Source of the DNA: Amoebophrya sp. A120
Lineage: Eukaryota; Protista; Dinoflagellata
Reading direction: 5' to 3'
DNA length: 64,000 bases
NCBI GenBank assembly: GCA_905178155.1
Contig: CAJINV010000001.1
Coordinates: forward strand, 4,550,233 to 4,614,232
Position numbers and translations under genes: made by a program
The notes under the pieces: model-generated
The model's input: only the letters and a program-made list of their open reading frames with translations
Databases searched by the model: none
Told to the model about the DNA's origin: nothing
Shown: positions 32,301 through 64,000 of the stretch, in pieces
Position numbering within the stretch: position 1 is the first letter of the stretch
Layout of the letters: each line of letters begins with the position of its first letter

Positions 32301-33505
32301 CGCTCCAGCCCAAGCGCATCACGCTTGTTATTCTGGATCACAAACGCGAACCCGTCCCCACCCTGCTTGTAGCACCATTGCGATTCTTTTCCCGCGACCT
32401 TGCACTCCTCCTTCCGGTGTAAAACGCGGAAGTGAAAGGAAGTTTTGAATCCATACGCGACGAACACCTTCTTCTTTCGGTAGATCGAAGCCCAATTTTG
32501 CGCGGTGGGGTTGGTCAGCCGCAGCCCGAAGTGGCAGACTTGCGGCCTTTTGTGGGGAAGTGCAATGTCGGGAATAAAGTCGTCGGGAACGAATTCAATG
32601 GTGCGATTTGCCTCGGTGAAGCTGCTGTTGAAGATGCGGCTCGCGTATTACAGTGAAAAGTGCCCCCCCACCCCTGAAATCGCAAAAATTTGTGATGCGA
32701 AGTTTCCAAATGAACACTTTTTGTCATGCATGAAAGCAGTATGAATCTTTCTGATGCTGAGTCTAGGCGTGTGTCGCATCGCTTGCATGACAAGCGCCGC
32801 TCTTGCTGGGGTCTTTTGCAATACAAATTTTTACTATTCACGTTTGGAAACCTGTGATGCTGATAGATGCAAGAGGGCGAATGTTTCACTTGGCAAGGTT
32901 TGCAATACAAATGCTCCCAAGTTCGGGGGTGGGGGCATTTTTCATTGTAATATCGCGAACGGGTTGTTCACGTAGTCGGGCAGGAGAAACGCGTTTTCCC
33001 GCAGGTTCAGCGGCTTGTACCGCGTCTGGAGGTACTGAAACTGCGCGCCCTGCACGTCCCCGTACTGCTTCGACGTGACCTCGTCCAAGTCGCTCGGCCG
33101 CGTACCGTTGTTGGCGACCCGCTCGGCCTCCAGGTTTGCCGCGTTTGCCTCGGGTACCGGGGTGAAGTCTTCCTGTAGCTCGCAGTTCTCCAGGTAGGCG
33201 GTCGAGAAGAAGGCTGGGTTTTGCTGTGGATCGGTCACCGTCCCGCCGGTCAGATAAAAATCTTCCGCTTGGGTGCCCGTGACGTCGACGTAGCTGCGGA
33301 AACCCGGATAGGCGAAGATGTCGCGGGGGGACGTTTGGCCCGGGACGCCCACAGCTTGCTGTCCCCGCACGCTGAGGTGCAAATGGCCGCCGAAAAAAAG
33401 TCCTAGTAGCAGCGAAAGAGAGGAAAGAAGATCCCGCCGGCACCAGGGGAGCTCCGAAGAGAACACGCACTGGGTACTGATTCGCTTCCGTAGCTTTGAA
33501 GACAT
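20328..33505 (-). CDS. Very large secreted adhesin-like protein: signal-like N-terminus, L-type lectin, Cys-rich/PAN-apple, LamG split by tandem discoidin (F5/8C)-like domains, EGF-like C-terminus
   Basis: Hydrophobic LLSSLSLLLGLFF near the N-terminus. Lectin motifs LRLT..GFKTSF, GDGFAFVIQ, LAIEFD, NHIGI, YVGFTSST, DILDWHF. PAN-like ECYEYCDRASGCNFFTF. Repeated A.D....TYW / ARYLKL / IREIEIY discoidin motifs. LamG motifs VHVVTTFD..YRNG..FHGTI. EGF CSGQGAC..CDCLPGYSGDACQ. Frames join across all 11 introners. A few canonical junctions (about 24750-24950 and 27460-27930) are uncertain, so a split into two genes is not excluded. Confidence 0.75.
21929..22104. mobile_element. TIR introner, singleton G
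   Basis: TATCAAACAAAAAAGTG ... CACTTTTTCCTGTAATA. DR AACAC. Splicing gives KWFVFLFRP. Confidence 0.85.
22360..22504. mobile_element. TIR introner, family B
   Basis: TATGAATTGCAAAAGTATCGTACTCGTAT ... ATACGAGTACGATAGTTTTGCACAGGATA. DR CCGCC. Confidence 0.93.
22544..22851. mobile_element. TIR introner, singleton H with a long TIR of about 57 bp
   Basis: TATGGAAGCGTCAGGTTTGAAATCGACAAAGTTGAAA ... TTTCAACTTTGACGATTTCAAACCTGACACATCCATA. DR CCACA. Splicing gives EIRVWEAV. Confidence 0.93.
23612..23848. mobile_element. TIR introner, family F
   Basis: TATCAAAGTGCACCACTC ... GAGTTGTGCACTCTCATA. DR TGTCC/GGTCC. Splicing gives DDSLDTFW. Confidence 0.85.
24071..24333. mobile_element. TIR introner, family A
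   Basis: TATCAAATGCAAAAATGTCTGGGTCTGGAA ... TTCCAGACCCAGACATTTTTACATTTGATA. DR GTACT. Splicing gives EAQYVRLTM. Confidence 0.94.
28153..28359. mobile_element. TIR introner, family C-related
   Basis: TATCACATTGAAAAGTGCCCCC ... GGGGGCACTTTTCATTGTAGTA. DR GTCCC. Splicing gives VPRDKCY. Confidence 0.9.
29041..29360. mobile_element. TIR introner, family D
   Basis: TATCAAAATGAAAAATCCCCCACCCCATATC ... GATATGGGGAGGGGGCATTTTTCCTCACAATA. DR ACGCC. Confidence 0.92.
29418..29679. mobile_element. TIR introner, family A
   Basis: TATCAAATGTAAAAATGTCTGGGTCTGGAAGA ... TCTTCCAGACCCAGACATTTTTACACTTGATA. DR GGCGA. Confidence 0.94.
30735..30883. mobile_element. TIR introner, family B (opposite orientation to the 6152 and 22360 copies)
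   Basis: TATCCTGTGCAAAAGTATCGCACTCGTATAAATGCA ... TGCATTTATACGAATACGATACTTTTGCAGTTCATA. DR GATAG/GAAAG. Confidence 0.92.
31231..31779. mobile_element. TIR introner, family F, expanded by a 9-bp minisatellite
   Basis: TATGACGCTGCACTACTCGCCCTCCC ... GAGGGGGAGTTGTGCAACCTGATA. DR TGTCT/TGTCC. Splicing gives QSVDILDWHF, the end of the lectin domain. Confidence 0.87.
31443..31724. repeat. GCAAAATG(C/T) 9-bp tandem repeat arrays inside an introner
   Basis: Directly visible tandem units, interrupted by reiterated copies of the element's right end. Confidence 0.95.
32646..32952. mobile_element. TIR introner, family C
   Basis: TATTACAGTGAAAAGTGCCCCCCCACCCC ... GGGGTGGGGGCATTTTTCATTGTAATA. DR TCGCG. 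Highly similar to 52868-53173. Confidence 0.94.
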
Positions 33506-44698: not shown

Positions 44699-47600
44699 TT
44701 AATCGTCGGTCTGCGAGATCATAGCGACACCACGCTTGGTCCAGAAGTTCTCGCTGTGGCCCTGGGCGTAGTCGACCGGCATGTACATAAACATGATGAA
44801 GTTGGAACTGTGTCCGGATGTGGACAGCACCCCGCGCCGGTCGCTGCACTTGTATATCCAATGCAAAAATGTCTGGGTCTGGAAGAGTCATGCTGTTTTT
44901 GCATGACACTGAAGGTCTGCCATGGAAGCTCTAGCATCACAGGCTTCGAGAAGCTTCCGCAATGCCGAATCCGCATGACAAATGCCCCACTTTGGTGACA
45001 GATAGTTGGCAGCTTTTGCTGCCTATGCATGAGAGATTTTTTTGTGTTGTGGAATGCGCATCACAAGTTTGCATTCTTCCAGACCCAGACATATTTGCAA
45101 TCCATATTGTACACCGGGTTGGCGTACATCTGGTTGTACACGTGTTCGTCCTTGTCTTTTTCGTTCGGCTTCAGCCAAATCAGGGGCACTGTGGACCACA
45201 GTACCTTCGGGAAGGAGTCCTGCAGCGTCATGGTGTCGTCCTCCCACCTGGCGCCCTGCATGTACAGGCCGCGGATGTAGCTACCCTTCTCCGGTTCCGC
45301 CGGATCGGTGTCGGTGGACGCCAGGGTTTCAAAGTTCCACATCAGCTTATCGATGGCGATGCTCGCGCCGCGCGCGAAATTCTGGAGCACACCGGTCAGG
45401 TAGGCCTGTTGGAAGAAGAAGGCCGAGAACCAGAACACTGTCGGGGCACCTGCAATAGTGATAGTATTCAAGTTGTCTTCGCTAGTATTAATAACCTCAT
45501 ACACTGCATTCTCCCATCGGCACTGCTTGCCTGTATGCATGTTCGTTGTTGACAAAGGAGCAGCAACTCTGCTCTGAGAAAGCGTTGTTCCCATAGACAG
45601 ACGAAACAGTGGCTGCAGAGAAAATGAAAATGAAAATGCTTGTCGACGCAAAGGAAATGTTGAAGAATTTAACATTATTAACCCGGGCAAAAATGAGGAC
45701 TGCGCAAATTATTTAATATCGTGGTCCCTAGTACCTTGCTTGATCCAGTCGTCCATGAATTTGAGCCTGTCCATGAAGTCGAAGACGTAGCTCATGGCGG
45801 GCTTCAGACTTGGATAACTGACGCCCAACCATGGTGGTGGGATGGTGTTCGTGAGGAAACCGCTGGCCACCGCCTCGAGTTCCGGCGAGAAGATGACCAA
45901 CCCCTTGGCCGCTTTCCCCAGGTTCACGCACGTGTCTTTCACCTTGTCGTAAAGCTTGATAAACTTGATCAACTCGTTCAGCAGCACCGTGTTCAGACAC
46001 TGGTCGTACTTGACCGGGTATTTTCTCCCGACCGCGCCCAAGTCAAACGCCTCGGGCATCAACGTGATCACCTGCTCGGCCAGGTTGCAGTACCGCTGCT
46101 CGTATCAAATGCAAATATGTCTGGGTCTGGAAAAGTGCAACGTTTGTCATGCACGTTTTGCATGACGCGTGAGGTCTATGATGCATGCCCTAGCATCACA
46201 GATTCTGTGAGATCTTTTCCATGCCTTTTCCGCATGAGAAACTGCCTCTCGGCCTTCTCAAAAGTGAACAGCTTTATTGGTAATCATGAAAAACAGATTT
46301 CTGTATGATTCAGATTTAGCATGACAAGTTGTACTCTTCCAGACCGAGACATATTTGCAATGCATAGCTCGGGCGTTTCCGCCTTGGCCCCCTCGTCTTC
46401 GTCGTCGCCGCCGCCGCCGCCACCGAACGAAGACATCAGGAGGAGCGCGTTCTTTAGCATGGAAATACCTGTTGGGTGGAATTTCGGAAGCAGTCGTTTC
46501 GGAAGAGAGATTCGATTGATCTATCGCTGCGACTCGCCCGACTTCTAAGCGCTGCAGCACAAAACGACTTATCGTCCATTCTCGGCATCTTTATCGCCGC
46601 TCGTCTTCATCAGCGTCAGGGTCAGCGTCAGCCCCCGACGGGCTCAGTAGGAATAGTATTGAAATTGATATAGATATTGAAGTTGATAAACAGAAAAAAA
46701 TAAACCTTTTTACCTTCGTTGATCGCCGCTGTGAGACTTGCGTTGGGGTGGAGCCAGAACACCTCGGGGGTGTGGTTCAACGGCAGACTTTCGACGTAGT
46801 CTAGGTGCTCCTTGATGGTGTTGGCAGTGGGCGAGTAGTAGATGCCGGAAATCGAGAACTTGTAGTCGTCTTCTAGGATCTTCGGTGTGTAGAAATCCTT
46901 GATGATCTCGACCTGTAGAGTGTGTTTTGTTTCTGTCACTCCATTTTTCGGTGCAGTCCGCATCAATGTATAAAACGAGCCTGCAACAGTTTGGGAACTT
47001 CGTTGACATTCGTCTTCTTCTTTTTTTCGTTTTCACATGCATCCTGCTCGAAATGAAAAAAATTATACGATAAGCCTCCTGTCCTGGCCATCTGTGACAC
47101 GACCACCGTAGTTTGCCTCGGCGACCATGTAGTTCAAAGCCGCATAGGGAATGTCGCTGAAGTCCTCGATGAAGTTGCGCAGTTGTTTCTGCGAAATGTC
47201 CAAATCTGGCTCGGAGAATCCGTAAGCCACGTTCCACCCGATGGGCCCAAAAGCGCGGCGCTCTAAGACAAGACCGTGAAAGAAGCAGAGCCCGAAAAGC
47301 AGCTTCTTGAAGGTCGTTGGCTTGGTCGAACTCTCGAACCACTCCTCGTCCATGCCTGATAATGAAATGTTTTGCTGTGATCCGCCATTTTTTCACGGGG
47401 TGCACTGGCTTGTGGCAACAGCACGAGCTGTTGTCGGAAAACGTCGTCGGAAAACATAAAAGTGTTTACAAAAAAAAATCTAATTTCGTACCGCGGTAGG
47501 CGCGTTGGAGCGAGTTCCTCAACCCCTTTGGTGGTTCGATGGTCATCTTGATTCCGCCTTGCAAAACGGCAATCGGGAAATCTGGAGATGGGCACGCGGT

Positions 47601-50600
47601 CAGCCACAATCGGAACGCGGGGTTCAGATCTTCCGGCTTCCATGCCTCGATCATACCTGGATTGTTATTTTTTCAAAAGGTATCTCGACCTAACAAGTAC
47701 TCTGAAGCTACAATGAGTCATCGAAAGCGGAGCGCCAAGAGAGGACACAAAAAAAAACTCAAGTCGCGTCGTAACAAGGAATTCATTGTCGATACTTATT
47801 TGTCGAACAAAACGCGTCACTCAGACAAAATACCTTCAAGCACGGGCATGTATGAGATTCCCAAGTGGCAGTTTTGCAGCAGCACCCACTTTCCGTTGGC
47901 AGAGCCATCCTTGATGCCCGCGGTGGCTTTTGGTCCTTGCCCCTGTCCCAGCGAAATCGGGACGATCTTGGACAACATATCGTGCTTCAACGCCAGGGCC
48001 GTGACATCTGCCATAGGGTCGGAACCCATCGACAGAATGAAGATCAGCGGCACCGCCGGAGAGCTGTCCTCGAACCACACGGGCAGATCGAAGGGGGGCA
48101 CCAACAGGTATTCGCGCCCGAGTTTGTTCAGTACCTATCGTATTTTTCAGATACACATGAAGTTTCAACTGATCGCTGCAAGTGCAACGATACAAAATGG
48201 AAAGTAACAATAACAAACTCGCGTAGCACAACTTTAATGTCATCAACAAACACGAGCACAGCAGGAACAAAATAAGAGGACACGGCAGGATACTATGTAC
48301 ATGCTTGTATCTTTTTTATACCACTTCCTGAATCGCGACCACGGTGGCATCGGTACGCAGTGCAAACATGGTGAGTGCCCGTTGCAGCGGGTTGCACTTC
48401 TGCTTGAAGTTCTTGGGCCACTCGATCTCGGCCGCCATCGGGTTTTCGCTGTCGAAAACGGCCTTCCAGCCTTCCAGATTGGCGGCGAAGTCGGCCGCGA
48501 ATCCCTCGAACACGTCCATCAGCGTTCCCAGCGTGGTCACACGCGCCCACGAGACATCGGTGAGCCAGTCGCTGTTCTCCGGCTTCGGCTCCAGGGCGCC
48601 ACCGCCGACGCAGGTCAAGAGCATATTCAACTGGTTCAGGTTAAGCTCCTTGTCCGTTTCCTGGCACTTCAAGCACAACATGAAGGAGTAAAGCAACTTA
48701 TCCTTCGCGAACAGGGAACGGCAGACCATGTCGTACAGCAAAGCCAGAAAACTGCGGAACAGCTCCGTCAACCGGTCGTCCTTGCTCTCCTTCGCTTCCG
48801 CGCGCCTGATGGACTCGACGAACTGCACCATGAACCAATCTAGAGAGAATTGGTACATGGGGTCCACAATACGCAGGTCCGCGATCACGAAGAACAGCGC
48901 CCCGCAACGGAAGGCGTGAGCCGTGTAGGACAGACGGGTCTCCGCGATGGTCGCGGCCGTCATCTCCTGCACCTTCACCTGCTCCCCGATGCGGGTGGAC
49001 GTCACCTTGGAACTCGCCAGCGTGTTGATCAACTCCTCGTCCTCCAGAATGTCCCCGGAGGAGGCGGACAGCAGCGCGAGAATCTTGTTCTCGATCTCGG
49101 CCAGCTCCGCCTTGGACTGCGCGGATTCGATAACCAGGTTCTGCCGAGCCTGTTCGACCTCCGGCTCCTCCATGGCCACCAGAATACCCAACATCGCATC
49201 CGTCAGACCGTCGACCGTGGCCATGAAGTTCAACAGACACGCGGCCACGCAAATCTCCGGGGCGTAGTGGGGGTTGGGCAGCTTGGTCGTGAAGTACAGC
49301 CGGAAGTCCTTGCTGTACTCGATCGTGCTGTCACCTGTGTGTGCGTCGATACGATCGTCGCGGTTTGCAAATTTACTGCAGTAAATATGTGTAGATGTTG
49401 TAGTTCTTCTGTGTGGACGGAACATTCATAAAAATCGTCACTCAAAAAAATGCAGAGGAATTTTTATGTGAAAAAAAATTATCGACTCTTACCCAATCGG
49501 ATCATTTCCTGGGGTCCCTGCTTAAACGTCGCCTTCAACAGCAGCGGGTTCAACATGGCGTCAATGGTGAGGCCGATGTTTTCGATCAGCACCGGGGTTC
49601 CGAAGGAGATGCAGGTCTCCAGGTTTCGCGCGTAGTTCTGGTTCAACCGCATCACCTTCAACTTCGTCCCGTGCGTGGTCTTGACCCACTTGTTGGCCTG
49701 GTTCTGCGGGTCGATCATCAGCGGCCACCGCGAGCTGTTGTCCAGGATGATGGCGTTATCAATCGACAGGTTGTCGTTGGGCAGCTTGTCGATGACCCAC
49801 TTGCGGATCTTCACCTGGTTCCCGATGCAGTTTGCCAACGTGAACTCCGGGGAGGCCGGGATTTGCAGTTCCGTCAGCTTGGTGAGCCACCTGTCGCACA
49901 CTTCCTTGCGGTACACGCCGGTGAAGCACCCGAGATACGCCATGATGCCGGACGCGATCAGGATGTCGCCGGTCAGGTTTGTGTAATCCTTGCCGAGTTT
50001 GGCGCTTTGCTGGGTCCAGGCGGCTTTCTCGCCACCCAGCCCGGTGATCAGCTTCTCGGCGCGCACCAGCTTCGCGCGGCAGTCGTCGCTGTTCTTCTGC
50101 AGTTCTTCCATCTTGGCCTTGGCCTCGTTCAGCTGGTTCACGAGCTTGTCGACCAGGGCAATCACCTCGGCGAGCTCGGCCTTCTTGCTCGCCAGCAGCT
50201 CCATCGCGTCCCCGGCGGACTTCTCGGCCTTGGCGAGCTTGGCCCGCTTCGGCCCCACCTCCTTCGCAACTTTGTCGTACACGACCATGGCACGGACCCA
50301 CTTACAAATACCCATCGCGGCAATGGAGGCCTTCTTGATAATGTCCGGATCGAACATTTCAGAATCATACAGCGGTTGCACCTTCTGGATCGCGTCGGGG
50401 GAAATGTTGTCCTTATCGAAGTTTACCATCTTTTCCAGCAGCCGGGGATCACCTGTGAAATAGCGTGTGAAGATAGTCCGTTTTGTCATCTTAGAACCTA
50501 TGTCATCTATCCATTTCAAGTAGATTTTTTTCGTAGAAACAACTTGAACTTGTTCGCAACCAAATTCTATTCTTGAGAAGGCATGCGGTAAAAATAAAAC

Positions 50601-53600
50601 CCCTTTGCAAGAAACAGTTGCAAAAAACAAAATGTCTGATTTCCTCAATCACAAAAATCTTACCGAGCAGTTCCTTTTTAGCCGGTTCCCAGAAGTCGTC
50701 TACCTTCCCCTTGCCGTCCGGGGCGGCGACCTTGACCGGCTTGACGCCGAACATGTAGCACAGGGCCTGCGAGGTGAGAATGACACCGGCCGGGGGCGTC
50801 TTCATCGCCTTCACCTCCCCGATATCACCCTTGGACAACTTGCTCAACGCGTCGACCGCGGCGTCCAGCGCCGGCATGGCGGCGGCCAGATCCTTCTCGC
50901 AATCGGCCTTAATTTCGTTCGCCTTCGCGCCCTCCTCTTCCGCGGCGGCGGCATCGGCATCGACCAGCTTCTGCTTCTCGCTCGCCTTTTTCTGTTCGCC
51001 CTCCACGTGAATCATCAGCTCGGAGGTCTCCTTCGCGGACTTCTCCAGCGACGGCTGCAGGTCCTCGAGATCCTTCTGCAGTGCGCCGACCGCCGAGGCG
51101 GCTTCCTCGATCTTCTCCATCCCCACATCGTACCGGGACTTGGCCGTGGACACGACGTCCCGCTGCTGCTTCAGCATCACGATGAAGGTGGAGATCAAGT
51201 CGAGGTAGGACGTGGGCGTCACGTAGAAGATACGCTTTTCCTGCTTGAAGAACTTCTCGGCGAGCTCGATCACGCTCGTCTGCTTCTCGACCATCACTTT
51301 CACCACGTTGTCCTTCACTTCCTCGGGCATGTCGACGGCCCGGAGGAACTGCTTTGCCACCGCGGTCAACGCCTGCGGCGGCCACTCCATGAACCAATCT
51401 GAGTTGAAAGTTTAAGTTTGTCTTTGTGACGGACAGTTTTTTTCTCGAATAATAAACTACCGGAAACGCTATTCATTGTTGGACTCTTCAGCGAGGGAGA
51501 ACAACATCAGATCAACAACAAGCGACTGCAATTATGCATATATGCAAAAAAACACAACAGCGAATTATACCGATCGTGCAGCAGTTGACGAGCGACGGGA
51601 AGTTTCGCAAGCGGATGCGGAAGTCCGCGCCGATCGGCGACAACGCCAGCACGATGTGCAAGTTCTGCCTGCAGACGCTCACGTACCAGGAGAAGACCTC
51701 GTTGGGCGTGATCTGGCCCGCGGCGTTGGCGCCCTTGGCGCAGAGCTCCATGATCTCCATCTTGTCTTCCTGGGAGTACAAGTTCGGGACCTCGCCCGTG
51801 TTCAAGATGGAGGACACCTCCTCCAGGAACGCCTCGTTGGCGATCTGCGTATCCGGGAACAGGAACACCATGTTCTTGTTCTGCCCACCGGCGGAGATCA
51901 GCAGTTTCTTGATGTCGTCGTGCCACTCGTTCATGCCGTAGCCCTTGGCCAACTCGATCTGGAACAGTTCAAACTCGGCCACGTAGGTGGCCAGCGTGGT
52001 CACGGACTTACGCCCGGAACCGCCCACACCGACGAGGAGGGCGTTACCCAGCGGGAGTTTCAGGACGCGAATCACGCGGCAGATGTGCTCCAGGAACGCG
52101 GTGAACAGCACCAGATCCAGGCGGATCTTGGACACGTTGTTGTAGTCATCCATGCACTCCTGCACCTTCTCAAGCAGCCGGTCCACGTCCGGAATTTCCT
52201 GGTACGCGGTGGATTTCGGGTCCACAAAGTCCACGAAAATCACCGGCTCGACCTGTGAAAAGTTTGGGAAATTGAAGGTCGAGATTTTGATTTGCATCCG
52301 ATGCAAGAATTCCCACAAATCGCAACACGTTTGAAAAACCAAAAATTTATTTCCCCGTCCCGTCGGCCCACTTCTACGCCGAATACACATACAGCTTTGC
52401 CCCTAAAAAGTTCTAAATCGCAGACTGATCACTTTGCTAAAATAAATATACCTTGACGACTTGGTCGTACGGCTTCTTGAAGTGCTTGTCCATCAATCGC
52501 TTGATCATAAACGTGAACGAGTTCTGATCTTGGCGGTTAATCAAACGGTCCTTGAAGACGCGCTCGCACTCGTGCATCCAGACCTTGCACAGGTCCTCCA
52601 CTTTCGGCAGGGATTCGCGCTGACAGATGCACATGCCCTGGAACACCTTCGCGACGTCACGCATGTTGAAAGTGTAGTGGGATTTCGCGGGGGTGGGCAG
52701 AAAGTCCTTCATCATGCTGAAGTAGACGTCCAGCACGCCCGACACCACGGCTGGGACCTGCGCGGCGATGTCCCGTGCGAGGTTCGCGAAGAAGACACCG
52801 ACGACGGTGGAGAAGATCCGCGCCAACGACTCGTCGTCGAAGGGGGTGACGAAGACCAGGTTGAACATATTACAGTGAAAAGTGCCCCCCACCCCCAAAG
52901 TTACAAACATTTGTGATGCGAAGTTTCCAAATGAAACCTTTTTGTCATGCATGAAAGGAATATAAATCTTTCTGATGCAGATTCTAGTGTTGTTTCGCAT
53001 CGCTTGCATGACAAGCACCGCTCTTGCTGGGATCTTTTGCAATACAAATTTTTGCTATTCACGATCGGAAATCTGTGATGCTGATACATGCAAGAGGGCG
53101 AATGTTTCATTTGGAAAGGTTTGCAATACAAATGCTTTCAAGTTCGGGGGTGGGGGCATTTTTCATTGTAATAGAACATCCGCGAGTAGCGGTCCGTGAT
53201 GTCGTTCTTGCCGCCGCCTGGCGGGCCCATGGCGGTCAGGTAGTTGATGTCCACCAGCGACCGGAAGTCCCAGCCCTTGCGGTCGTACCAGCCGAAGCCC
53301 AGCGGCGTCTTCACCATCGCCTGGCGGAGGATCTCGATGGGCGGCTGCGCGCCGTAGGTCTCCTTGATGGGCATGTTCAAGTCATCGATGAACACCAGCA
53401 TCTTTTTGTTCATCGGCGGGCCGTACACGCCCTTCCTGCGCTTGTCCAGCTTGCCGTCAATGATGTCCTGCGTCTGGTTCGCGGTGGTCTGTGCGGAGAA
53501 CGCGAACGCGATGGAGGAGTACTTCTTCGGGTGGAACCCACCGAGCAGCATCCCGTTGATGGAGGCGGTTTTCGCCGTACCGGTGGGCCCGGAGAGGAGG

Positions 53601-56600
53601 ATGTTGTGGCCCTTCTCGATCAGGGTGCGGATCAAAAACTGGTTGCGCTCCGTGTCCGCGGTGGGGACCACGATGGTGTGGTACTGCGTGCCCTTGGGGA
53701 TGTCCAGCGGCGCGATGCGCTCCGTCCACAGCTTCCACTTGCCGCCGTCCTCAGCGTCCACGTAGTAGTCGTGCAGCGTGCCCTTGCGCGGGGGTACGGG
53801 GATGGCGGCGCCGGACTGGAGGTCGTAGAACTCGGGCAGCACGATGAAGTTGTTCTTCTTGAAGTACTCGCTCTTCTTCTCGATGGCCGCCTTGATGGCG
53901 CCGTCCGCGACCGCGCGCCCGTCGTTGTTGGACACCGCGCCCACGGTCCACACGCACGTGAAGTAGAACAGCTGCGCGATGATCAGCTCGCGGTCCACCG
54001 CGGACTGCGGCTGCGGCGCGTTCTTGTCCTCCTCGTTCGGCTCCCCATCGGGCCGGCAGTACTGCATCACCTGTCAGATAGAAAGCAAAGTTCGGCGCTC
54101 GCTATGAATTCCGGCGATGCGGTAATTAATCGCTGCGCCTTCCGTTTTGCGAAGTAAAAAGCGCGACGCGCGCACTTCGGCCTTCCCCTTGGGAAGCCCG
54201 CCACGACGCCGGTCGGGTTCCTGTGCGGCGGCGGTCGTGCGCAAACCCAAAAAATTTTTGCGCGCCATACCGACGCGCCTGATGTCACCCCGCCGGACAC
54301 GGCGGGCGCCTGCTTTTTGCTCGTTTTCGTTTGTGCTTTTTTTATGTTTTTTTTTTTGCATTTTTTCGGAAGGTACTTTCGCACCTCAAAAACAGAGAGG
54401 ATCTGCTTGACCAGGCGGAAGCCTCCTGGCCAAAAATGGCAAAACGTTACACCCCTAGAACCGGTGACAAGCTGATCAAGTCTTCAGCGTCCCGCCGTGT
54501 TTGGCGGCGTGACAAATTTCGGATTGGGCACAAGGCGCATTCAAAATGGGCGATTTTTTTCATTTTTTCATTTTTTTTTTCTTGCAAAAGACGATGGCAG
54601 TCGCAGTGCGGACCCACGGAGGGTCCGAGTTCGCTACTTTTTCGCAAGCGCACCGGGGGGACTAGGGACAGAAAAAAACTTTCATTTTTCGGATACCAAT
54701 GCGTCCTTGGGCGCAAAAGTCGATATTTTCGCCCCTTCCCCCGTCGGAGCGCTGCTGGTTTGGCACACTTTTTGGCCGGCCACGCGGCCGACTTCGGGTC
54801 CAGCTTAGCAAGCCCTTCCCCCGGTGGTACTGCCCCACTTTGGGGGGAACCCCTTTGTTCCTTCTAGATCCCCCGTAAGGTAATCCGCCGTCGAACGCAA
54901 CGATTAATTTACCCATTATTTGGTCAAGGCGAAATGACCACTCTACGTACTACTGACCAAAAATGCCAAAGAAAAGTGCCAACGTTACTGTACCTGATCC
55001 GAGATCAGCGATTCCATAAGTCGGCAGGCGGACAGGGCGAGCCAGTTGTCGGAGCACGCGACTGGGGTGGGCACAATGTGCGAGGTTTCCAGGAAGACCT
55101 CGAACATGCCAGTGAACATATCCATAATCTGTTTCTCGTGGTCCTTGCGGATGTATTCCGGAAGCGTGGCCAACCAACTCTGCACGATCGGCTGCCAGCC
55201 CAGATCGGTGTCCGGTTCCAGGTACACGATACCGACGCGGGACACAGTTGCGGGAGATGCGTACTCCAGGTCGCGCACCTCGAACAACATCGTGGTGACC
55301 GGGGACAGCTTGATGATCTCACCTGTTTTGATTAAAATGTGGCAAGTTTGATGACATCAGGCTGCGCGGGCGTCGAACTAATACTGCGTGAAAAGCAAAA
55401 GCTACGTGTTGCAAAACCAAAAGACTTTTCGCAGACAAGGAAATTATAAATGTTCGCACATACAAAAGCTATGGACTCGTCAAGTGGAACGAACGCCCAA
55501 GTTAACTACTTTTGAAAAAAATCATACCAGAGTTCAAGCAGAGCTTCTTGTTATCATCCAGCACGGTGTTCATGTTCTCGATCCAGATCGCATCGACCGG
55601 ACCGTCGAGCACGACCCACTGGCGTCGCATCTTGCCGTCGGCGCCGACGGGCTGCGAACCGTTACGCACGGCAATGGCGAGCACACCGTCGGTCCACTCC
55701 TGCGTGTTCAGATCCGCCTCTCCGTAGAGCTGACCCTGCGTAATGGATTTCGGGTTCATCACGTACTGCACGACGGGCATGAACAATTCGTTTTGCCCGG
55801 AGACGCGCTCCAACGTCGTCGCCAGCACGTCCTTGATCGAGGTCTTCCCGCAGGGCGGGAACCCGACGGTCATCAGACCGTGGCGCACCACGATGGTTTC
55901 CCACAGCTGCACGGCCTTGTTGGTGAATTCACGGGTGGGCTGCAAACCGAACTGGGTGGTGACCTGCTCCAGGTTGGTGACCAGGTTGCCGTAGTCGGCC
56001 GGCGGGAGTCGCACCCCGGGGAACAAATCGCCGATGATACCCTTAAAGAGCGGGATGTCCGCGGACGTGAACTTCGGTAGATTGACGTCGGTAAAGGAAC
56101 GCAGCGCGATCACGTCCTCCGGGTACTTGTCGCCGTACGTTCGCTTCCCGTTACCACCCGCGACCAGCAGCGCATTCAGACCACGCATCCCGAAATCGTA
56201 GTGCTTCGCCGGGGACAGCTGTTCGGAGGACAGCTTCAGCGCCATGGTGGCCTTCATACCGATGCGCTTGGCGTCTTCGTACCCGTAGGAGTAGAGACGA
56301 ATCTCACCGATTAACGCGTAGTTTGGCACCATCATCGCGCAGGGGCGGAACAAAGCCTTCAGGTTATCGGGCAACTCGGAACGCCCAGCGTAACCGGGGT
56401 TCATCGTGATGTTCACGGCGCACGTCGGCACCAGGCGGATCTCCGTTTCCTCGAAAACGAACGTGGTGACGCGCTGCTTGATCGCCAGCGAAATCTGCTG
56501 AATCTGCTGCGCGACCACCGACAACACCTCCAGGGAGATACGGTTAAACTCATCGAAGCAGCACCAGGCACCGGAGGAGGCCAGACCCTTGAAGAACTTC

Positions 56601-59600
56601 GCCAGCTGCAGGTAGTCCATACTGTCGGAGCAGTTGAACACCACGCACTGCACGGCCAGGGCCTTCGCCAAATCTTTCGTCGATTCCGTCTTCCCCGTTC
56701 CGGCCGGGCCCTCCGGGGCGCCACCGTAGTACAGCGCGAACGCACCCATCAAGGTACGGTAGCAGCGATCGGTCAGTGGCGTGACCACGAGACGCGCGGT
56801 GTTCCCCAGGTACTCGAACCCGTACAGCAGCGTCGAATTCACGATGGAACAGCAGCACTCGTTCCTGCTGTTCTTTTCCCCGGACAAGAGCGTGTGTTCC
56901 CCCACCGGCTTCCAGTAGTACCGGAGCTGCGACAACCATTGGAAGTCCTCCTTGCTGTCGACACCGTTCTCCCTGAGCTCGGTGATCACATCACGCGCGT
57001 GCACATCCAGCGTGACCAGCGCACCGACAGTGACGCGCGCGAGCTTGGACATCTCGCCACGCACCAGCTCGACGATGTTGCTGATCTGCTGGAAGAGCTT
57101 CTTTTCGTAGTCTGCAATCTTCTTCTTGTCCAGGTACTCCTCCGCGCCGATCGTCCAGTAGTAGCACGAAGTGCAGATCGCCACCTGGCCCGGCCACAGG
57201 AGACACCACTGGTGGCGCTCGATCTGCGCGTAGTTGTCGTTGCACTCCGCGATGACCAGGCGCAAGGTGTCCATCATGGACTCCTCCAGCTCCACCAACC
57301 AGCGCTCGACGGCGCCGCGGTTGCCCGGCTTGTTGGTGTCGATCTGCCGCTTCAGCTCGATCTCCTCGCCCTCCGCGGAAATCATGCTCTCGATCACCGT
57401 CTTGCCACCGTCGAATCGCACCTTGGCCACGCCCTCGAAGGCCTTCCCCAAGTGCGGCTGCACCGCGGTGGGATCCTTGGTCTCGGCCAGGATGGACAGC
57501 AGATCTGCGTCGTTCAAGAAGAAGAACCGCGGGAAGTACAGCCGCTTGGTCTCCAGGTAGTCCTTCAGACCCTTCTGGACCTTTTCGATGGTCTCGTTCC
57601 CGTCCTTCAAATCCTCGATCAAGCCGGGGATGCGACCCACGCGCAAAGCGAGCTTGTCCTCGTCGACCTCCAGCATCCGGGCCCGGAACATTTTGTCCAC
57701 GATCTCGAACTGTTCGCTCTCGTGCGGCAGCTGGCGCTTGATATCTTCGGAGACAAAGATCGGCTCCAGCGCCATCCACGAGCGCTGCAGCAGGATGGTT
57801 TCGTCCACGAAGTCCTGAATCCGCAGCAGCAACGCCTCCCACTCGTGCACCTCGGCCTCGAACGGCTTGCAGAAGGGCGAGGACCGGATCGCCTGCGTCT
57901 TCACGATGAAGTCGTCCAGGTAGGCCTGGATCTCGTCGATCCCGCCGAGCAGCGGCACGCCCGTGTTCTTGTAGGCCTTCAAAGACAAGCTGATCGGCTC
58001 CCACTCGACCTTCATGTTGGCCAGCGCCCGCTTCAATGAGTACTCCTTCGTGGCCGCCATGGCAATCTCCTCGTAGTCCTCCGGGAAGTCAAGCACGCCA
58101 ATGTCGATCATCTCCTGCATGGTGATCATCTTGATGTCCTCCGTCGCCGGCTTTTTGCCGCCCATGCGCTCCGCGAGCGTGTCCCAGTGTCGCTGCAGGA
58201 TCGCTTCGGACGAGAAGGCGCGGAGAAAGGGGAACTTGACCTTGAACGCGTCAATGGCGTCGCGCAGCGCGCGCGCGGTGTTGCGCACGTTCTTCATGCT
58301 GTCGGAGGAGAACTGCTTCATCATCTTCACGCAGTCCTTGAACCACTGGTCCAGCTGCTCCTCCACCTTGGGCGCGTCGATGGTTGACAGCGGCTTTTCG
58401 TGCCACAGCTTCTGCAGCTTCTGGAAGTTGATCACGGCGTCCCACAGCGTGTAGTAGGGCTTGTAGTCATCGATCATGCCGTCCAGTTCGTAGTAGTCGC
58501 TCCGGGTCAAACCCAACAGCGCCTCGCGGCTGTTGTAGCTCTGGGTGCGCTCCACGCCCTTGTCCAGGGAGGACCGGAGCAGGTAGATGTCCGGCTCGTA
58601 CTCCTGCCACAGGCTGTAGTCCTTGAACTGCTTCCGGATTTTGTCCAGCAACTTCTGCCAGAACAGCATGTCGTGGTTGAATTCGGCCTGCTCCTTTTCC
58701 AGCGTGGTAATCTCGGAAATGTCGCGGTTCAACCGGAAGTGCCACAGCCGCACGCTGTTGTCCTCCGAGCACGTCGCGAGGCACTGGCCCAGCGGCGCCC
58801 AAGCACCGTTGTGCACGGCGGCAATGTGGCCTGTGATGTCACAGATCGCGGAAGCGTTTTTTGCTTCAATGCAGAAAAATATTAGTTTACCCAACGCGAA
58901 AAGCAAAATTCCCCGAAAGAACAAGAAAACGCAAAAAACACAATTGATCATCATAGCATACAATAAAGATGACAACTTAACAAACTACAACCAAGAAGAG
59001 GCATAATTGTACCTGGCAACGGAGCGGTTCGTGGGTTTCCGCTCACCGCGGAGAAGATTTGCATGTTCATGTCCTCGTTGGAGCAGACAATGGAGGCGCA
59101 GTCGGGCGACCACTGAACAAACCCGGTCAAGTTTTGAATGGGGTCCATGTTGCGGCTCGGGTGCAGAGCGGACTTGTCTTCGTTCCACATATCCCAGATG
59201 ATCACCGTCGCATCGGCAGACGCCGTGGCCATCAACCGCGGGTTCATCGGACTCCAGGCAACGCAGGTAATGGAAGCGTCGTGCGCCTGGAACGTGATGG
59301 GGTCACCCGGTTCCTCTTCGGGTTCGGGCGGGCCCTCCTCGCCCCAGCCCTCCTCCGGCTCTGGCGGCAGCGGGAGCTTCTTGTTGGGCCCCCGCACGAA
59401 GTCGGACTCGTTGGCGTCGCTGTAGTAGAAGCGTCCGTTCTGCCCACCGGAAACCACCGCACCGCCATCGCAAGCGATACTGAGCGACAACTGCGGAACC
59501 TTGGACTTCTTCTCCATGCAGATCAGGTCCCCGGGCTGCTCCGTGGTCTCCTCGCCGATCAGCGTGTTCCACATCCGCACCGTACCGTCCTGCCCGCACG

Positions 59601-62600
59601 AGAACAGGTTGGGCTTGGTGCCGAACGCGGCGCAGGGCACGATCTCCTTGCTAGCCTCGCGCTCCTCGCCGTCCTCCTCTCCCTCCTCGGGTGGGGGCGC
59701 TTCGGCTTCCGACGCCTTGGACGACTTCCTCGGCTCCTTCCGGGGCTTGCTTTGGTCCTCGCCGCGGCCCGGGTGAAACTTCAAGCCGGTGACGGCACCG
59801 TTGTGACCGGCCATCGTCTTGAGGGCCCCCGCATCCGCGGTTTCGGCGGAACTTGCATCGACCAGCAGGATGCTGCCGTTCTCCAATCCGACCGCGACGG
59901 TGCAGAGGTTGAGTTGCGACATTCCGTCGGACAGCAGCGAGTCCGTCGTGGGCGGGAAGGCGAGGCTGGTGACCGGCGATCCGCAGTCCACGGTGGCAAC
60001 GTGGGCGCCGTTGATGTAGCTCCACACATTGACCTTACCGTCCACGCCGCCGCTGACCATGACACCGTCGTGCTGCGAGAACGCCACACAGCTGACGCCC
60101 TGGGTGTGTCGGTCCAGCGGGTCGTTTTTCGGCACGCACACCGTCGCCGGCGCGTAGTAGGACACCACCGTGGGGTCCAGCAGCACGATTTCCGGAATGC
60201 GCTCCGGCGGCTTCACCGGCTCGGGGGGCGGCTGCGGCGGCTCCTCGCCCTCCTCCGCTTCCGGGGGGTCGTCGAAGAACTGCTGGCGCGCCTTCAGCTG
60301 CTTGTCGTACTCTTCGAGCGCGGCTTTCTCGGCGTCCTCCTCGGCCTTGGTCTGCTTCGGCAGCGTTTCCGGACCGGCGTACTTCACCTTCAGGCCGTGC
60401 ATCTCGTTGGGTCGCGAGTAGTACTCCACGCGGAGCAGGTGCTGCCCCTTGGTCAACTCCACCTCCGCGGTGGTTTGGTCCAGGTCGATCAGCAAGTTGT
60501 CGTTCACGAACATGCGGGCGCGCTTGTTGGCCTCGCAGAAGAACTTGTACAGCGCCCGCTTCTTGCCGCCGCACGCGACAGTCAAGTACCCCGTGTAGCG
60601 GGCGCAGAACCCGGGCGCGCCGTAGCGGTCGGGCAACCGCGTCCAGGGGTCGGTGTCCATGTCGAAGTCGAGCATCTTCTCGATACGCTGGATATCCGGG
60701 GTGCCGTTCGGCATGGTCATCTCCGTCGACATGTCCACCGGGAAGTACTCCGCCATGAAACCGGGCTTCTCCAAAATGTTGGTCGACTGCAGGTCGTGCT
60801 GCAGCACGCCGGCCGGAACGGACACCATGCTCTCGTGCGTGTCCGGTCCCTGGTACTTCAGGACCACTTTCTTGTCCATGTCGCTCTTGGCGCAGTAGTC
60901 CAAGCGGATCGTGTGCGTGCCCGCGACAAAGTAGTACCGCTTTCCCGCGACGATGTTCCGAGCGCCGATGCGGAGCGACGCGTAAGCCTCGGCGCTCAGG
61001 TCGAAGGTGTAATCCCCCATCTTCGCGATGGACAGCGTCCCGGAATAGCGGGTCGCGAAGTTGCCGGCGAACTCCATGCTCAGCCCCGTCCAGGGCTGGC
61101 CGTTTCCGGGCGCGCGGTTGATCTCCTGTTCCAGTCGCGTCAAATCCGGCTTGCGACCAAGCAGCGGTGGGATGCTGAGCGCGCCGTTGTTGAGCGCGCC
61201 GTTCATGTCCTCGTAGTTAAAGTACTGCGCGACCAGGCAGGCGCGCAGCTCGTCCGCCAGCACGGCGCGGTGCGGAGAGGCCGTAGCGCGCATGGTGGTC
61301 ACGGAGATGCGTTCCATCTCGATCATCAGCGTTCCCAACTGCAGCTTGATCGCGGCCTTGCCGTCGTCGCGCTCCGCGACGGACCACGTTCCGACCTGCC
61401 CGGACTCGGTCAGCGAAACCATGCCGTCCGCCTTGATCAGCAGCGAGTCCTCGGTCAACCGGCCGCCGGGCTTCCACAGCCAGTGCCCGCAGAACTCCAG
61501 CACCTTATCCGAGGGGTCCTTGGGTCGCACCAGCTGAGCGTGGATGCGACGGCCCATCCCTCCGTGTGCAAACTTCACGTCGTAGGTACCGTTGGAGTAC
61601 GCCTCCACCACGCTGCCGCTCACGTACCGGCCCTGGCCTTCGTAGTTCACCATCAAATCATCGCCGACCGCCAGGCGGCGGAACTCGAACCTGGTCTCCC
61701 AGAATGTTGGCTCCTCCTCGTTGCGCTTCTGACTCTGCAGCACCAGCTGGAAGCCGTGCACCTTGTTCACCTTGTCCTTTGCCTTGCTGCTCTGCGCGGC
61801 GATGTTCGTGATCGCGCGGCAGGCCTCACCCTGCAGCAGCGGAAAATCGGTGTGCTGGTTGATGCACTGCACGATCGTGTCTACCGTGCCCAAGTCGCAC
61901 ATGCGGTCGACCTGTTGATGCGCGGAAGATAATGTTTTGACGAAAAAAAATTGAGAAACTTTCTCAAATTCAATGCAGAAAAGACATGAAATTCTTTTGA
62001 ATTTCCAGACAACTAACTGTAACTTACTTTCTACTTCTCATGCATTTTGTTTTGAATTTGATTCTGCTTTTACTTATGAGCGAAAAAAAAAAGACGGCAG
62101 CAATACCACTTCCCCGGCGTGCGGGCCGCAGCACTGCGCTAAGTTTGCGATGGCGCGAATTCCGGTCTCCGCGATTGCGGGCAGGGACGTGTAGTTCATC
62201 AGTTTGTCTTGCAGAATGACGAGTCCGCCGTCCTTGTAGAAGTCGTAGCCGAAAAAGCCGGCGTTGACGCTGCTGGGCGAGGTGACGTTAGCAACCGCCT
62301 GAAAGGCCGACAGCACAGTCTCGTCCTCGTCTGCGCGCTGGAAAAGGTGGAGCACGAGCGGGTTTTCATTCCGTCGGAAGGTCTTGGCCTTGTTGGCGAT
62401 GGGCTTCCAGTCCGGGAAGTGCATCTGCTCCAGCATGCTGGTCACGCAGCTGGCGTCGTTGTCGGGCGAGTAGCAGAAGACGGGCAGCCGGCGCATAATG
62501 GTCTGCAGCTCCTGCGGCGCCTTCTTCACCTCCACCTCAAACATGGGGCACTTCTCCACGTGGCACATCATCAGCACCTGCGCCCCGCCCTCCAGCCCGC

Positions 62601-64000
62601 ACATAATCTCCTCCTTCACCACGTCCTTCATCAGGACATCCTGCCGGAGCAAGACCAGCATGTTCAGCGCGTTCAGCGGCGCCGTGTTCTTCTTGGGTTC
62701 CTCCGGCGCCTTCTTGTCGTCCTTCTTCTTCTTGTCGTCGCCCTTGTCGTCCTCTTTTTTGTCAAAGTCCGTCCCGAGCACCAGCCGGATGTTCGGCGTG
62801 AACTTGCGGATGGAATTGGCCAGTTGGAACGCGAACTCGCGCGAAAATTTGCTGCGGTCGTGCGTGACGTACAGGTCGTAGGTTTTCTGGAACCGCTTGC
62901 CCTTCTTCATCGTTTTCACCTTGTCGCTGACGTACTTGTAGTGGATGCCCACGTCGCGGGACTCGCCCTCGAAGATGCCCATCGACTTCGCGATGAAGGC
63001 GTGGTAGTTGAAGAAGGTGGTGTAACTGATCTCGCTCTCCAGCGTGAGACCCGGGTACAACATCATACTGTACACGCGGCGGGAAATCATCTCGCTGTAC
63101 TGGCCGCCGAGGGTCTCCGTCATCAGCCGGTCGATCTCCGCGAACTGCCCCCACGTGATGCGGCCCTTGCCCTGCGTGTCGTACAAGGCAAACAGGTTTT
63201 TGATGCAGGTCTCCACGTCGCCGGGGATCTTCTTGTTCTTCATTTCGTACAAACTGGTCTTGTACACGGCCAGCCGACCGTCGAACGCCAGCTCCATGGC
63301 CTGCGAGTTCTTATAGTTCAGCTTGAAGCTGGCCACGCCCGCGGCGCGGGTCCGCGGCGTCTTGTTATCGTCCGTCTTCACGAAGGCCGGGTCGGCAACT
63401 AAAGAGCGCAGCGTCGCGTCCGCGGTGCCCTCCAGGTACACAAACCGCATGGCCCGGTTCAAACAGGACTGCAGGACCGGGTCCTGGCACTTCTCGATCT
63501 CCGCGTCGATGTCCGGACACTGGGACAGGTGCTGGATGATGCACACCTGCAGCTTATCCTAATGAAAAACGTCCCCACCCCAGAGTCAAGATGGGGATTT
63601 TGCAACACAAACCTTGAAGTTTTGGGAGGCACGCATGACAAATTGCTAGCTGTATTGTAGCGCAGTTTAGAAAGGGAAGTCGCACTACAAATCCATCGGC
63701 TTATCCCGTTTACAGCATTACAAGTTCCAAAACACGATCGGAAATGCCTATCATGGGGATGCGCATTACAAATGCTCTTGCGCTTGCAGATCTGCATGAC
63801 AACTCTGGGGTGGGGATGCTTTTACACAGGATACAGCTCGGATTCCAGCGCGGCCTTCACCTCCTCGACCACCGCGCTGCCCTTCCCGTTCTCGTCGGTG
63901 GCGATATCACAGTGAAAAATGCCCCCCACCCCTGAAATTGCAAGAGTTTATGATGCGAAGTTTCCAAATGAAAGCTTTTTGTCATGCATGAAAGGAGTAC
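44699..64000 (-). CDS. Single-headed inner-arm-type dynein heavy chain (DNAH1/3/7/12-like motor) with a large N-terminal multidomain extension; 5' end beyond window
   Basis: P1 [33 protein letters not shown], P3 GPTGTAKT, P4 GVGGSGRKS, C-terminus NPVYKCSDRRGVLSTSGHSSNF...WTKRGVAMISQTDD with stop at 44699. The last WD40 repeat and DHC_N2 lie in the same exon. Upstream exons join in frame through GT-AG introns 58831-59012 and about 61912-62109. Confidence 0.9.
44855..45106. mobile_element. TIR introner, family A
   Basis: TATCCAATGCAAAAATGTCTGGGTCTGGAAGA ... TCTTCCAGACCCAGACATATTTGCAATCCATA. DR TTGTA. Splicing restores the conserved dynein motif PVYKCSDRRG. Confidence 0.94.
46103..46366. mobile_element. 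TIR introner, family A
   Basis: TATCAAATGCAAATATGTCTGGGTCTGGAA ... TTCCAGACCGAGACATATTTGCAATGCATA. DR GCTCG. Confidence 0.93.
52868..53173. mobile_element. TIR introner, family C
   Basis: TATTACAGTGAAAAGTGCCCCCCACCCCC ... GGGGGTGGGGGCATTTTTCATTGTAATA. DR GAACA. Splicing gives DRYSRMFNLVF in AAA3. Confidence 0.94.
63555..63833. mobile_element. TIR introner, family E
   Basis: TATCCTAATGAAAAACGTCCCCACCCCAGAGT ... ACTCTGGGGTGGGGATGCTTTTACACAGGATA. DR CAGCT. Splicing gives ALESELQVCII. Confidence 0.93.
63905..64000. mobile_element. TIR introner, family C, truncated by window end
   Basis: TATCACAGTGAAAAATGCCCCCCACCCCTGAAAT...TGATGCGAAGTTTCCAAATGAA matches the left ends at 32646 and 52868. Confidence 0.88.

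Follow-up and report, generated by a model that had tools for sequence, protein, structure and literature searches.

The stretch of DNA analysed here, in the following called the window, comprises 64,000 nucleotides (nt) of the dinoflagellate Amoebophrya sp. A120 (assembly GCA_905178155.1, contig CAJINV010000001.1, positions 4,550,233 to 4,614,232 of the forward strand). A single gene on its minus strand extends from about 45,064 to 64,922 in window-equivalent numbering, with the start codon located 922 bases beyond the end of the window. The gene encodes a dynein heavy chain with a swapped tail. A motor of known type is preceded by about 1,750 residues that contain, from the N-terminal end, three domains that are probably TIR-like, a helical region with a degenerate EF-hand, ARM repeats, a Tudor-like unit, a beta segment, two PA14 domains, an acidic and proline-rich spacer, and a WD40 propeller. 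As far as we have found in the literature, this architecture is new for dyneins.

The junction between tail and motor lies within one open reading frame on the minus strand, 55502-58975, which holds a WD40 repeat (residues 47-78), the linker domain DHC_N2 and AAA_6/AAA1 with zero stops in between, and the observation of an earlier note, made from the sequence of the window, that the last WD40 repeat runs into the dynein linker without an intron is thereby borne out. The next frame upstream, 58951-61902, contains exon 2 with two PA14 stretches and WD40 repeats above cut-off, and a weak Arm match. The gene starts at the first ATG following an in-frame stop (L002:1922, window-equivalent 64922), which opens a frame of 258 residues, and the relatives described below use the same methionine. 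Exon 0 (window-equivalent 64182-64922, or L002:1182-1922, outside the window) carries the start codon, and encodes TIR-like domain 1 and, beyond a long helix, the first half of domain 2. It is followed by a mini-exon of 66 nt, or 22 codons, at 63834-63899, which encodes a further part of TIR-like domain 2, aligns within uninterrupted frames of the relatives, and is joined on both sides in spliced contigs. The earlier note had placed the start of the gene at 63904; this position is about 5 bases past the upstream end of the mini-exon, within an intron. The exon lengths, 741 nt from the ATG, 66, 1443, and 2899 nt plus 2 nt from the next exon, imply that the reading frame is kept through splicing, and along the five spliced exons no stop was encountered, as judged from the spliced contigs and frame arithmetic.

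Public sequencing runs were mapped on L003 (window 58700-64699). A contig of 7,619 nt from run X1 matches with 0 mismatches and skips four introns exactly, joining the exons up to the linker and AAA1. It begins some 187 nt before the ATG, with an overhang of 410 nt at the upstream side of L003, and ends 2,152 nt past window position 58700, so that it covers some 2.3 kb of the linker exon and enters AAA1. The identical four joints occur in the contigs of X4, a second sample. The tail and the start of the motor are one transcript, and the claim of the earlier note that the upstream exons join in frame is confirmed by these contigs and by relatives that are colinear across every junction. The note had also suggested a check for separate transcripts or a misassembly; the spliced X1 contig crosses the junction between tail and linker. 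In estuary metatranscriptomes (X5-X7), 9-11% of the sampled words of the gene stretch are present, which may reflect transcription of the gene in nature by A120 or a close relative.

Intron A (63900-64181, of which 63900-64000 is in the window) is 282 nt long with non-canonical ends and a 5-nt ambiguity in the X1 and X4 contigs, and intron B (63550-63833), 284 nt, is also non-canonical, of introner type with terminal inverted repeats and a 5-nt ambiguity. Introns C (61912-62106, 195 nt) and D (58831-59012, 182 nt, within the propeller) are of the GT..AG type, and both are skipped in X1 and X4. As a separate observation, introns A and B are alike in that their ends are non-canonical, their borders are ambiguous by a 5-nt direct repeat and their terminal inverted repeats belong to one G-rich family; this repeat is also found at 53145-53165, 32924-32944, 29332-29352 and 16007-16027, with 5 occurrences in the window as compared to 0.01 expected. 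Introner elements have been described for Amoebophrya (PMC7789003), and the repeats of the non-canonical introns fit that description.

The public NCBI annotation of A120 has a model for the N-terminal part of the gene, P0164, a 315-residue 'unnamed protein product' that matches window-equivalent 64922 to about 63490. The reported identity to the exon 0 query is 100%, with one residue differing. P0164 shares the first two splice junctions with the gene and takes in exon 0 and the mini-exon, together with 19 residues from exon 1, after which it departs from the conserved frame into an unrelated tail of 27 residues, and the N-terminal part is thus cut short in the published annotation. P0164 has the appearance of a truncated or mis-spliced model of the dynein fusion gene. 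Since our searches of public proteins were length-limited, a full-length annotated protein of A120 or A25 would lie outside their range. The tail is single-copy within the A120 genome. A 23-residue, 83% identical copy of the start of exon 1 was observed at G000:C25:211818-211886 (L008), within an open frame of 323 codons.

Four environmental sequences from uncultured marine relatives (P0020, P0167, L004 and L005) have the same architecture in uninterrupted frames, with tails 39-62% identical to that of A120. P0020 (1,016 residues) has PA14, WD40 and DHC_N2 in one protein and is colinear with A120 from the last part of exon 2 into the first part of exon 3, reading uninterrupted through the very point at which intron D is spliced out; P0167 (1,529 residues) has ARM, PA14, WD40 and DHC_N2. 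In L005, a 10.5-kb JGI contig, a frame of 1,871 residues starts with a methionine at the same N-terminal position and proceeds through ARM, two PA14 domains and WD40 into DHC_N2, and after one frame change there are 1,612 more open motor codons. L004 (62-73% identical) has the architecture of L005 up to the limit of the contig. When the relatives' frames are aligned with the A120 sequence (alignment A3), exon 0, the mini-exon and exon 1 fit end to end. A partial match of 48% was also seen in L006 (JGI contig Ga0126342_10002820, 27.8 kb, 10001-11029), covering exon 2 residues 31-265, which is the end of the ARM repeats, the Tudor-like unit and the next segment; this contig has few long open frames and may come from a relative rich in introns. 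Named taxa yielded no orthologue, the matches in Amphidinium, Lagenidium and Phytophthora being through PA14 or Tudor repeats only, without a dynein.

The earlier note had also proposed a phylogeny of the motor domain. In a maximum-likelihood tree of the region from linker to AAA1, with rows that are tblastn or blastp matches projected on the window sequence and with 15 other A120 dynein loci and no reference classes, the five fused forms make up one clade (100/100), which is sister (100/99) to an A120 paralogue on contig C5. The upstream frame of the C5 paralogue has a weak match to an ordinary inner-arm tail (E 9e-6), and a paralogue on C7 has a DHC_N1 tail. Other dynein genes are close at hand on the contig: a second heavy chain gene is found in the window at about 11426-14107 on the minus strand and a third just before the window (G000:C1:4523424-4526872), so that about 90 kb of this strand contain three. 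Elsewhere in the genome, two pairs of near-identical or close dynein loci, G000:C3:6441604-6444483 with G000:C18:625693-630144, and G000:C2:12653415-12656408 with 12635411-12638647, are separated by branch lengths of 0-0.17. These may be recent duplications, or the first pair may involve a redundant haplotype contig.

The motor is complete, since all motor domains are present in order. The last piece of an inner-arm-type neck and the linker lie at 57242-58627 (DHC_N2 at 57242-58480, E 1e-123), followed by AAA1, the main ATPase site, at 55841-56824, where AAA_6 matches over its full profile (E 7e-138) and the Walker A and Walker B motifs are canonical in the translation. AAA2, AAA3, AAA4, the stalk with the microtubule-binding domain, AAA5, AAA6 and the C-terminal domain are spread over several exons at 45064-55840 on the same strand, where AAA_7, Dynein_AAA_lid, AAA_lid_1, AAA_8, MT, AAA_9, Dynein_heavy, AAA_lid_11 and Dynein_C all match above cut-off. 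The closest solved structures in PDB, over about 1,000 residues, are DNAH7 (999 bits), DNAH12 (990), DNAH3 (985), DNAH1 (954) and DNAH6 (812). Judged from the sequence, the motor is of the single-headed inner-arm kind, nearest to DNAH7, DNAH12 and DNAH3. The alignment with DNAH7 begins at DNAH7 residue 709, which follows the last propeller blade by about 38 residues; of the inner-arm tail, the neck alone is retained. Pfam and PDB searches of exons 0-2 gave neither a DHC_N1 match nor a match to any PDB dynein, and an N-terminal tail of one of the nine ancestral dynein classes, be it DHC_N1 or an inner-arm tail, was not found.

In the tail, each exon was analysed singly, and continuity was judged from the spliced contigs, the frame arithmetic and the colinearity with the relatives' uninterrupted frames. 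The WD40 propeller, closest to the linker, consists of blades 1-6 at the end of exon 2 (59013-60129, PF00400 E 9e-26) and blade 7 in the first codons of the linker exon (58742-58830), in the frame shared with DHC_N2. The count of six blades plus one comes from reading the translation, and the seventh is missing from the model of exon 2 because it is encoded in the next exon. Foldseek matched the model to seven-bladed propellers with template modelling (TM) scores of 0.7-0.75, which identifies it as a propeller. Upstream of the spacer, PA14 domain 2 (60352-60765) gave 45.6-48.8 bits with PF07691, the cut-off being 24, and PA14 domain 1 (60838-61248), the other of the two PA14 stretches, can be aligned, as an internal repeat, with the second PA14 domain of P0020. 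When the model of exon 2 was compared by Foldseek, a sensor with tandem PA14 domains (6qdi, E 4e-14) came out on top. The two PA14 domains and the WD40 repeats, as read in the earlier note, are thus above the Pfam cut-offs.

Two other modules proposed in that note rest on other grounds than Pfam. The Tudor- or Agenet-like barrel at 61510-61686 has five short strands in the model (predicted local distance difference test, pLDDT, about 65), and with the unit as query (residues 73-131) phmmer gave multiple matches to proteins of Tudor_5, SGF29_Tudor and Agenet repeats, among them the Tudor-array protein P0005 with 29 matching stretches (E 6e-78); there was no direct Pfam match on the window sequence. 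The ARM repeats are divided between the end of exon 1 (62107-62376) and the start of exon 2 (61696-61911), where the Pfam Arm profile stays below cut-off with E 0.005. Helices are predicted at 2-72 in the exon 2 model, continuous with the ARM region of the model of the orthologue L004, and when the latter was used for a further fold comparison the match list was filled by ARM, so that these repeats are identified by their armadillo superhelix fold. Between the Tudor-like unit and PA14 domain 1, at 61249-61509, we also observed a conserved beta-rich segment that has no family match and is modelled with low confidence.

The most N-terminal domains were more difficult to classify. The earlier note had proposed two TIR-like domains; the fold evidence agrees with this type of domain, but the number is three, and no profile of the TIR clan exceeds its cut-off on the window sequence. 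Besides domain 1 in exon 0, they are domain 2, the C-terminal part of which lies at the start of exon 1 (63388-63549, coordinates from alignment A3), and domain 3 with an insert rich in lysine and aspartate (62416-62892). The three are mutually homologous with hhalign probabilities of 97%, 95% and 89%, the best being domain 2 against domain 3 (E 2e-11). An AlphaFold model of the N-terminus of L004 (mean pLDDT 72) shows three beta-alpha domains, which are set apart by a long helix and by the helical region with the EF-hand; the domains, the part of domain 2 in exon 1 included, have pLDDT 75-90. In Foldseek the model matched the TIR domain of SARM1 over 155-162 columns with TM 0.71-0.76 normalised to the target, probability 1.00 and E about 3e-3, an alignment to an unspecified one of the three alpha/beta domains in a model folded as a whole. 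Full-length SARM1 and the plant TIR-NLR RPP1 were also matched. In the relatives there are sub-threshold hits to TIR (E 0.004), ThsB_TIR (0.035) and TIR_2 (0.065), and TIR_2 is present in the nearest clusters of the ESM Atlas, at scores of 0.88-0.92, a range that shuffled proteins sometimes reach.

It can be argued that the three domains belong to some other flavodoxin-like module with no TIR-type function, and that the name is misleading. This would agree with TIR profiles staying below cut-off on every sequence, the best being E 0.004 in one relative, with the blank result of PADLOC on the TIR-like region, with the overlap of the ESM Atlas scores with those of shuffled proteins, and with a Foldseek list whose E-values are only about 3e-3 and in which SIS-type and other Rossmann-like folds also occur. 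We find it rather unlikely, as the TIR domain of SARM1 is the sole single-domain target covered at TM above 0.7, as compared to 0.17-0.25 for SIS, and three independent weak lines converge on the TIR clan. An acidic residue, in the helix position that the alignment puts after the third strand, is also kept in domains 2 and 3 (alignment A3; Glu in most rows, Asp in one), and is a candidate equivalent of the catalytic Glu of SARM1. Because the fold, sub-threshold and ESM Atlas signals agree, yet no profile is above cut-off and the PDB and PADLOC searches are blank, we regard the modelled alpha/beta domains as probably TIR-like and any catalysis by them as putative.

The helical region between TIR-like domains 2 and 3 (62893-63387, exon 1 residues 55-219) is the most conserved part of the tail; in alignment A1, 43 of the 45 invariant columns are found at first-row residues 58-234, which span this region and the first residues of TIR-like domain 3, and there is no invariant column further on, where most rows end. 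It contains the degenerate EF-hand that the earlier note had pointed out, with a loop at 63148-63201 in which several positions are non-canonical, including a lysine at a ligand position. The loop is visible in the sequence, but EF-hand_6 remained below threshold (E 0.013, 15.6 bits as compared to a cut-off of 25), and it does not qualify as an EF-hand by profile. Among 12 aligned rows, 8 have sub-threshold EF-hand matches, centrin was found at E 0.015 when PDB was searched with a profile, and the region is poorly predicted in the L004 model. The TIR and EF-hand labels are both weaker than the title of the earlier note implies.

Taken together, it is highly probable that this is a real, expressed gene of A120, a member of Syndiniales, and that its product is a dynein heavy chain of about 5,000 residues with a replaced tail, whose mode of action can in part be outlined. 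The motor would hydrolyse ATP and pull on microtubules, as suggested by the intact motifs of AAA1, while the new tail would take over the role that the tail and accessory chains have in other dyneins. It is conceivable that the propeller beside the linker serves as a built-in platform similar to an intermediate chain, that the TIR-like triplet mediates self-association or possibly nucleotide chemistry, and that the ARM, Tudor and PA14 modules select the partner or anchoring site by binding to peptides, methylated residues or glycans. The earlier note's view of a lineage-specific dynein of the single-headed inner-arm type carrying its own scaffold holds up, with DNAH7, DNAH12 and DNAH3 nearest, one transcript and one clade of environmental relatives.

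Several points weigh against this interpretation. The type of runs X1 and X4 is RNA only by the guess of the tool, and their contigs can hardly be genomic DNA because the introns are absent from them; two raw-read RNA runs, X11 and X12, placed zero reads and so constitute no test. As the X1 contig ends in AAA1, it is from the order of the motor exons alone that the mRNA is taken to continue to its 3' end. The model of exon 2 is weak, with a mean pLDDT of 59, and the N-terminal model, made from the orthologue L004 instead of the A120 protein, has a predicted TM score (pTM) of 0.44. For TIR, Tudor, ARM and EF-hand no profile reaches cut-off on the window's own sequence, and in PDB sequence searches no TIR match was obtained, whether the query was exon 0, exon 1, domain 3 by itself or the A3 profile. 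The assignment of the motor to IAD3 (class 7) is made by score ranking, the motor tree being without reference classes, and in the P-loop of AAA3 (exon 53138-54070) an alanine replaces the consensus second glycine, whereas AAA1 and AAA2 are canonical. Finally, the proposed mechanism draws on sequence and models.

A simpler view would be that the protein is an ordinary axonemal inner-arm dynein which docks at the standard site via accessory proteins, and that the extra domains decorate the flagellum. The motor does cluster with the single-headed inner-arm dyneins, and the EF-hand region is weakly similar to centrin, which serves some inner-arm dyneins as a light chain; Amoebophrya also makes flagellated dinospores (PMC7789003). 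What makes this view doubtful is that the part responsible for docking and for binding of light chains is missing, since homology with the inner-arm dyneins starts at DNAH7 residue 709. Furthermore, the C5 paralogue keeps its weak match to a normal inner-arm tail, which implies that the standard sites may already be served. As the canonical docking tail is gone, the swapped-tail dynein would probably occupy a place other than the standard inner-arm site of the axoneme, and it may still have a flagellar role in the dinospores.

It is very improbable that the gene is a decaying or non-motile relic that has been kept as a scaffold only. Non-motile dynein subfamilies have reportedly been proposed, in the title of one study (PMC11785096), and the non-consensus P-loop of AAA3 would point in this direction, but all exons are open, AAA1 has the full profile and canonical motifs, the stalk and the microtubule-binding region are present, the motor is 70% identical to that of L005 over about 1,000 residues, and the gene is transcribed. 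Scarcely credible at all is an artefact of assembly or annotation, in which neighbouring genes for a scaffold protein and a dynein have been read as one: the public annotation has its separate N-terminal product, and dinoflagellate genes lie in dense same-strand arrays where contigs can span two genes, but misassembly is rejected by the open exon shared by blade 7 and the linker, by the stop-free spliced exons and by the four independent environmental sequences with the same junction in one frame, and P0164 itself looks truncated, running into an unrelated tail after its 19 exon 1 residues.

The tail of a dynein sets the location and the cargo of the motor. In the swapped-tail family the ancestral tail has been dropped and adaptor-like modules are built into the heavy chain itself, which raises the question of whether a motor can work with a built-in propeller, a pair of PA14 domains and a TIR-like array in place of separate intermediate and light chains. 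The marine alveolate (MALV)/Syndiniales lineage is a globally abundant group of parasites in marine plankton, and to our knowledge almost nothing is known about its machinery for motility and infection. A motor-linked TIR-like triplet beside ARM repeats would be a new setting for TIR-fold domains, and the truncated P0164 model suggests that the introner-rich genes of the A120 genome conceal large architectures. We expect the gene to be of high interest to cell biologists working on dyneins and protists. One may speculate further, as a long shot, that the fused forms constitute a further dynein class, confined to marine alveolates of the Syndiniales type and the first in which the entire tail is replaced, and that the TIR-like triplet is an active, ARM-regulated switch that cleaves NAD+ or oligomerises. 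If so, a signalling enzyme would be carried or positioned by its own microtubule motor, or the assembly of the motor would be gated by TIR-TIR association.

Parts of the tail have counterparts in other systems. SARM1 is an NADase with the order ARM - SAM - TIR, and has ARM repeats together with a TIR-fold domain in common with the A120 protein. The order is reversed in A120, where three TIR-like domains come before ARM and there is no SAM, the identity is 14-16%, SARM1 has no motor, and as compared to the NADase of SARM1, catalysis by the A120 triplet is at most predicted. The two consecutive PA14 domains resemble those of the clostridial RsgI anti-sigma protein (6qdi), but the latter is a bacterial extracellular carbohydrate sensor and the A120 protein is a dynein. 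With DNAH7, DNAH12 and DNAH3 (IAD3, class 7 of Kollmar) the similarity comprises the linker, the six AAA modules, the stalk and the C-terminal domain, and about 90 residues before the linker can also be aligned; the first 700 residues or so of the normal tail are absent in the A120 protein, which instead has its 1,750 unrelated residues. Full-text searches for dynein with PA14, TIR or Syndiniales yielded no description of such an architecture in the library searched, in agreement with the earlier note, whose author knew of none. In the largest survey, covering 3,272 dyneins (Kollmar 2016, PMC5100056), the new classes and every orphan dynein except one had tails that aligned with one of nine ancestral classes, and WD40 repeats are described for class 10 alone, as an extension at the C-terminal end. 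Contrary to the class-10 dyneins, which have a conventional N-terminal tail, the A120 fusion has its propeller in the N-terminal part, directly before the linker, together with the TIR-like, ARM, Tudor and PA14 modules.

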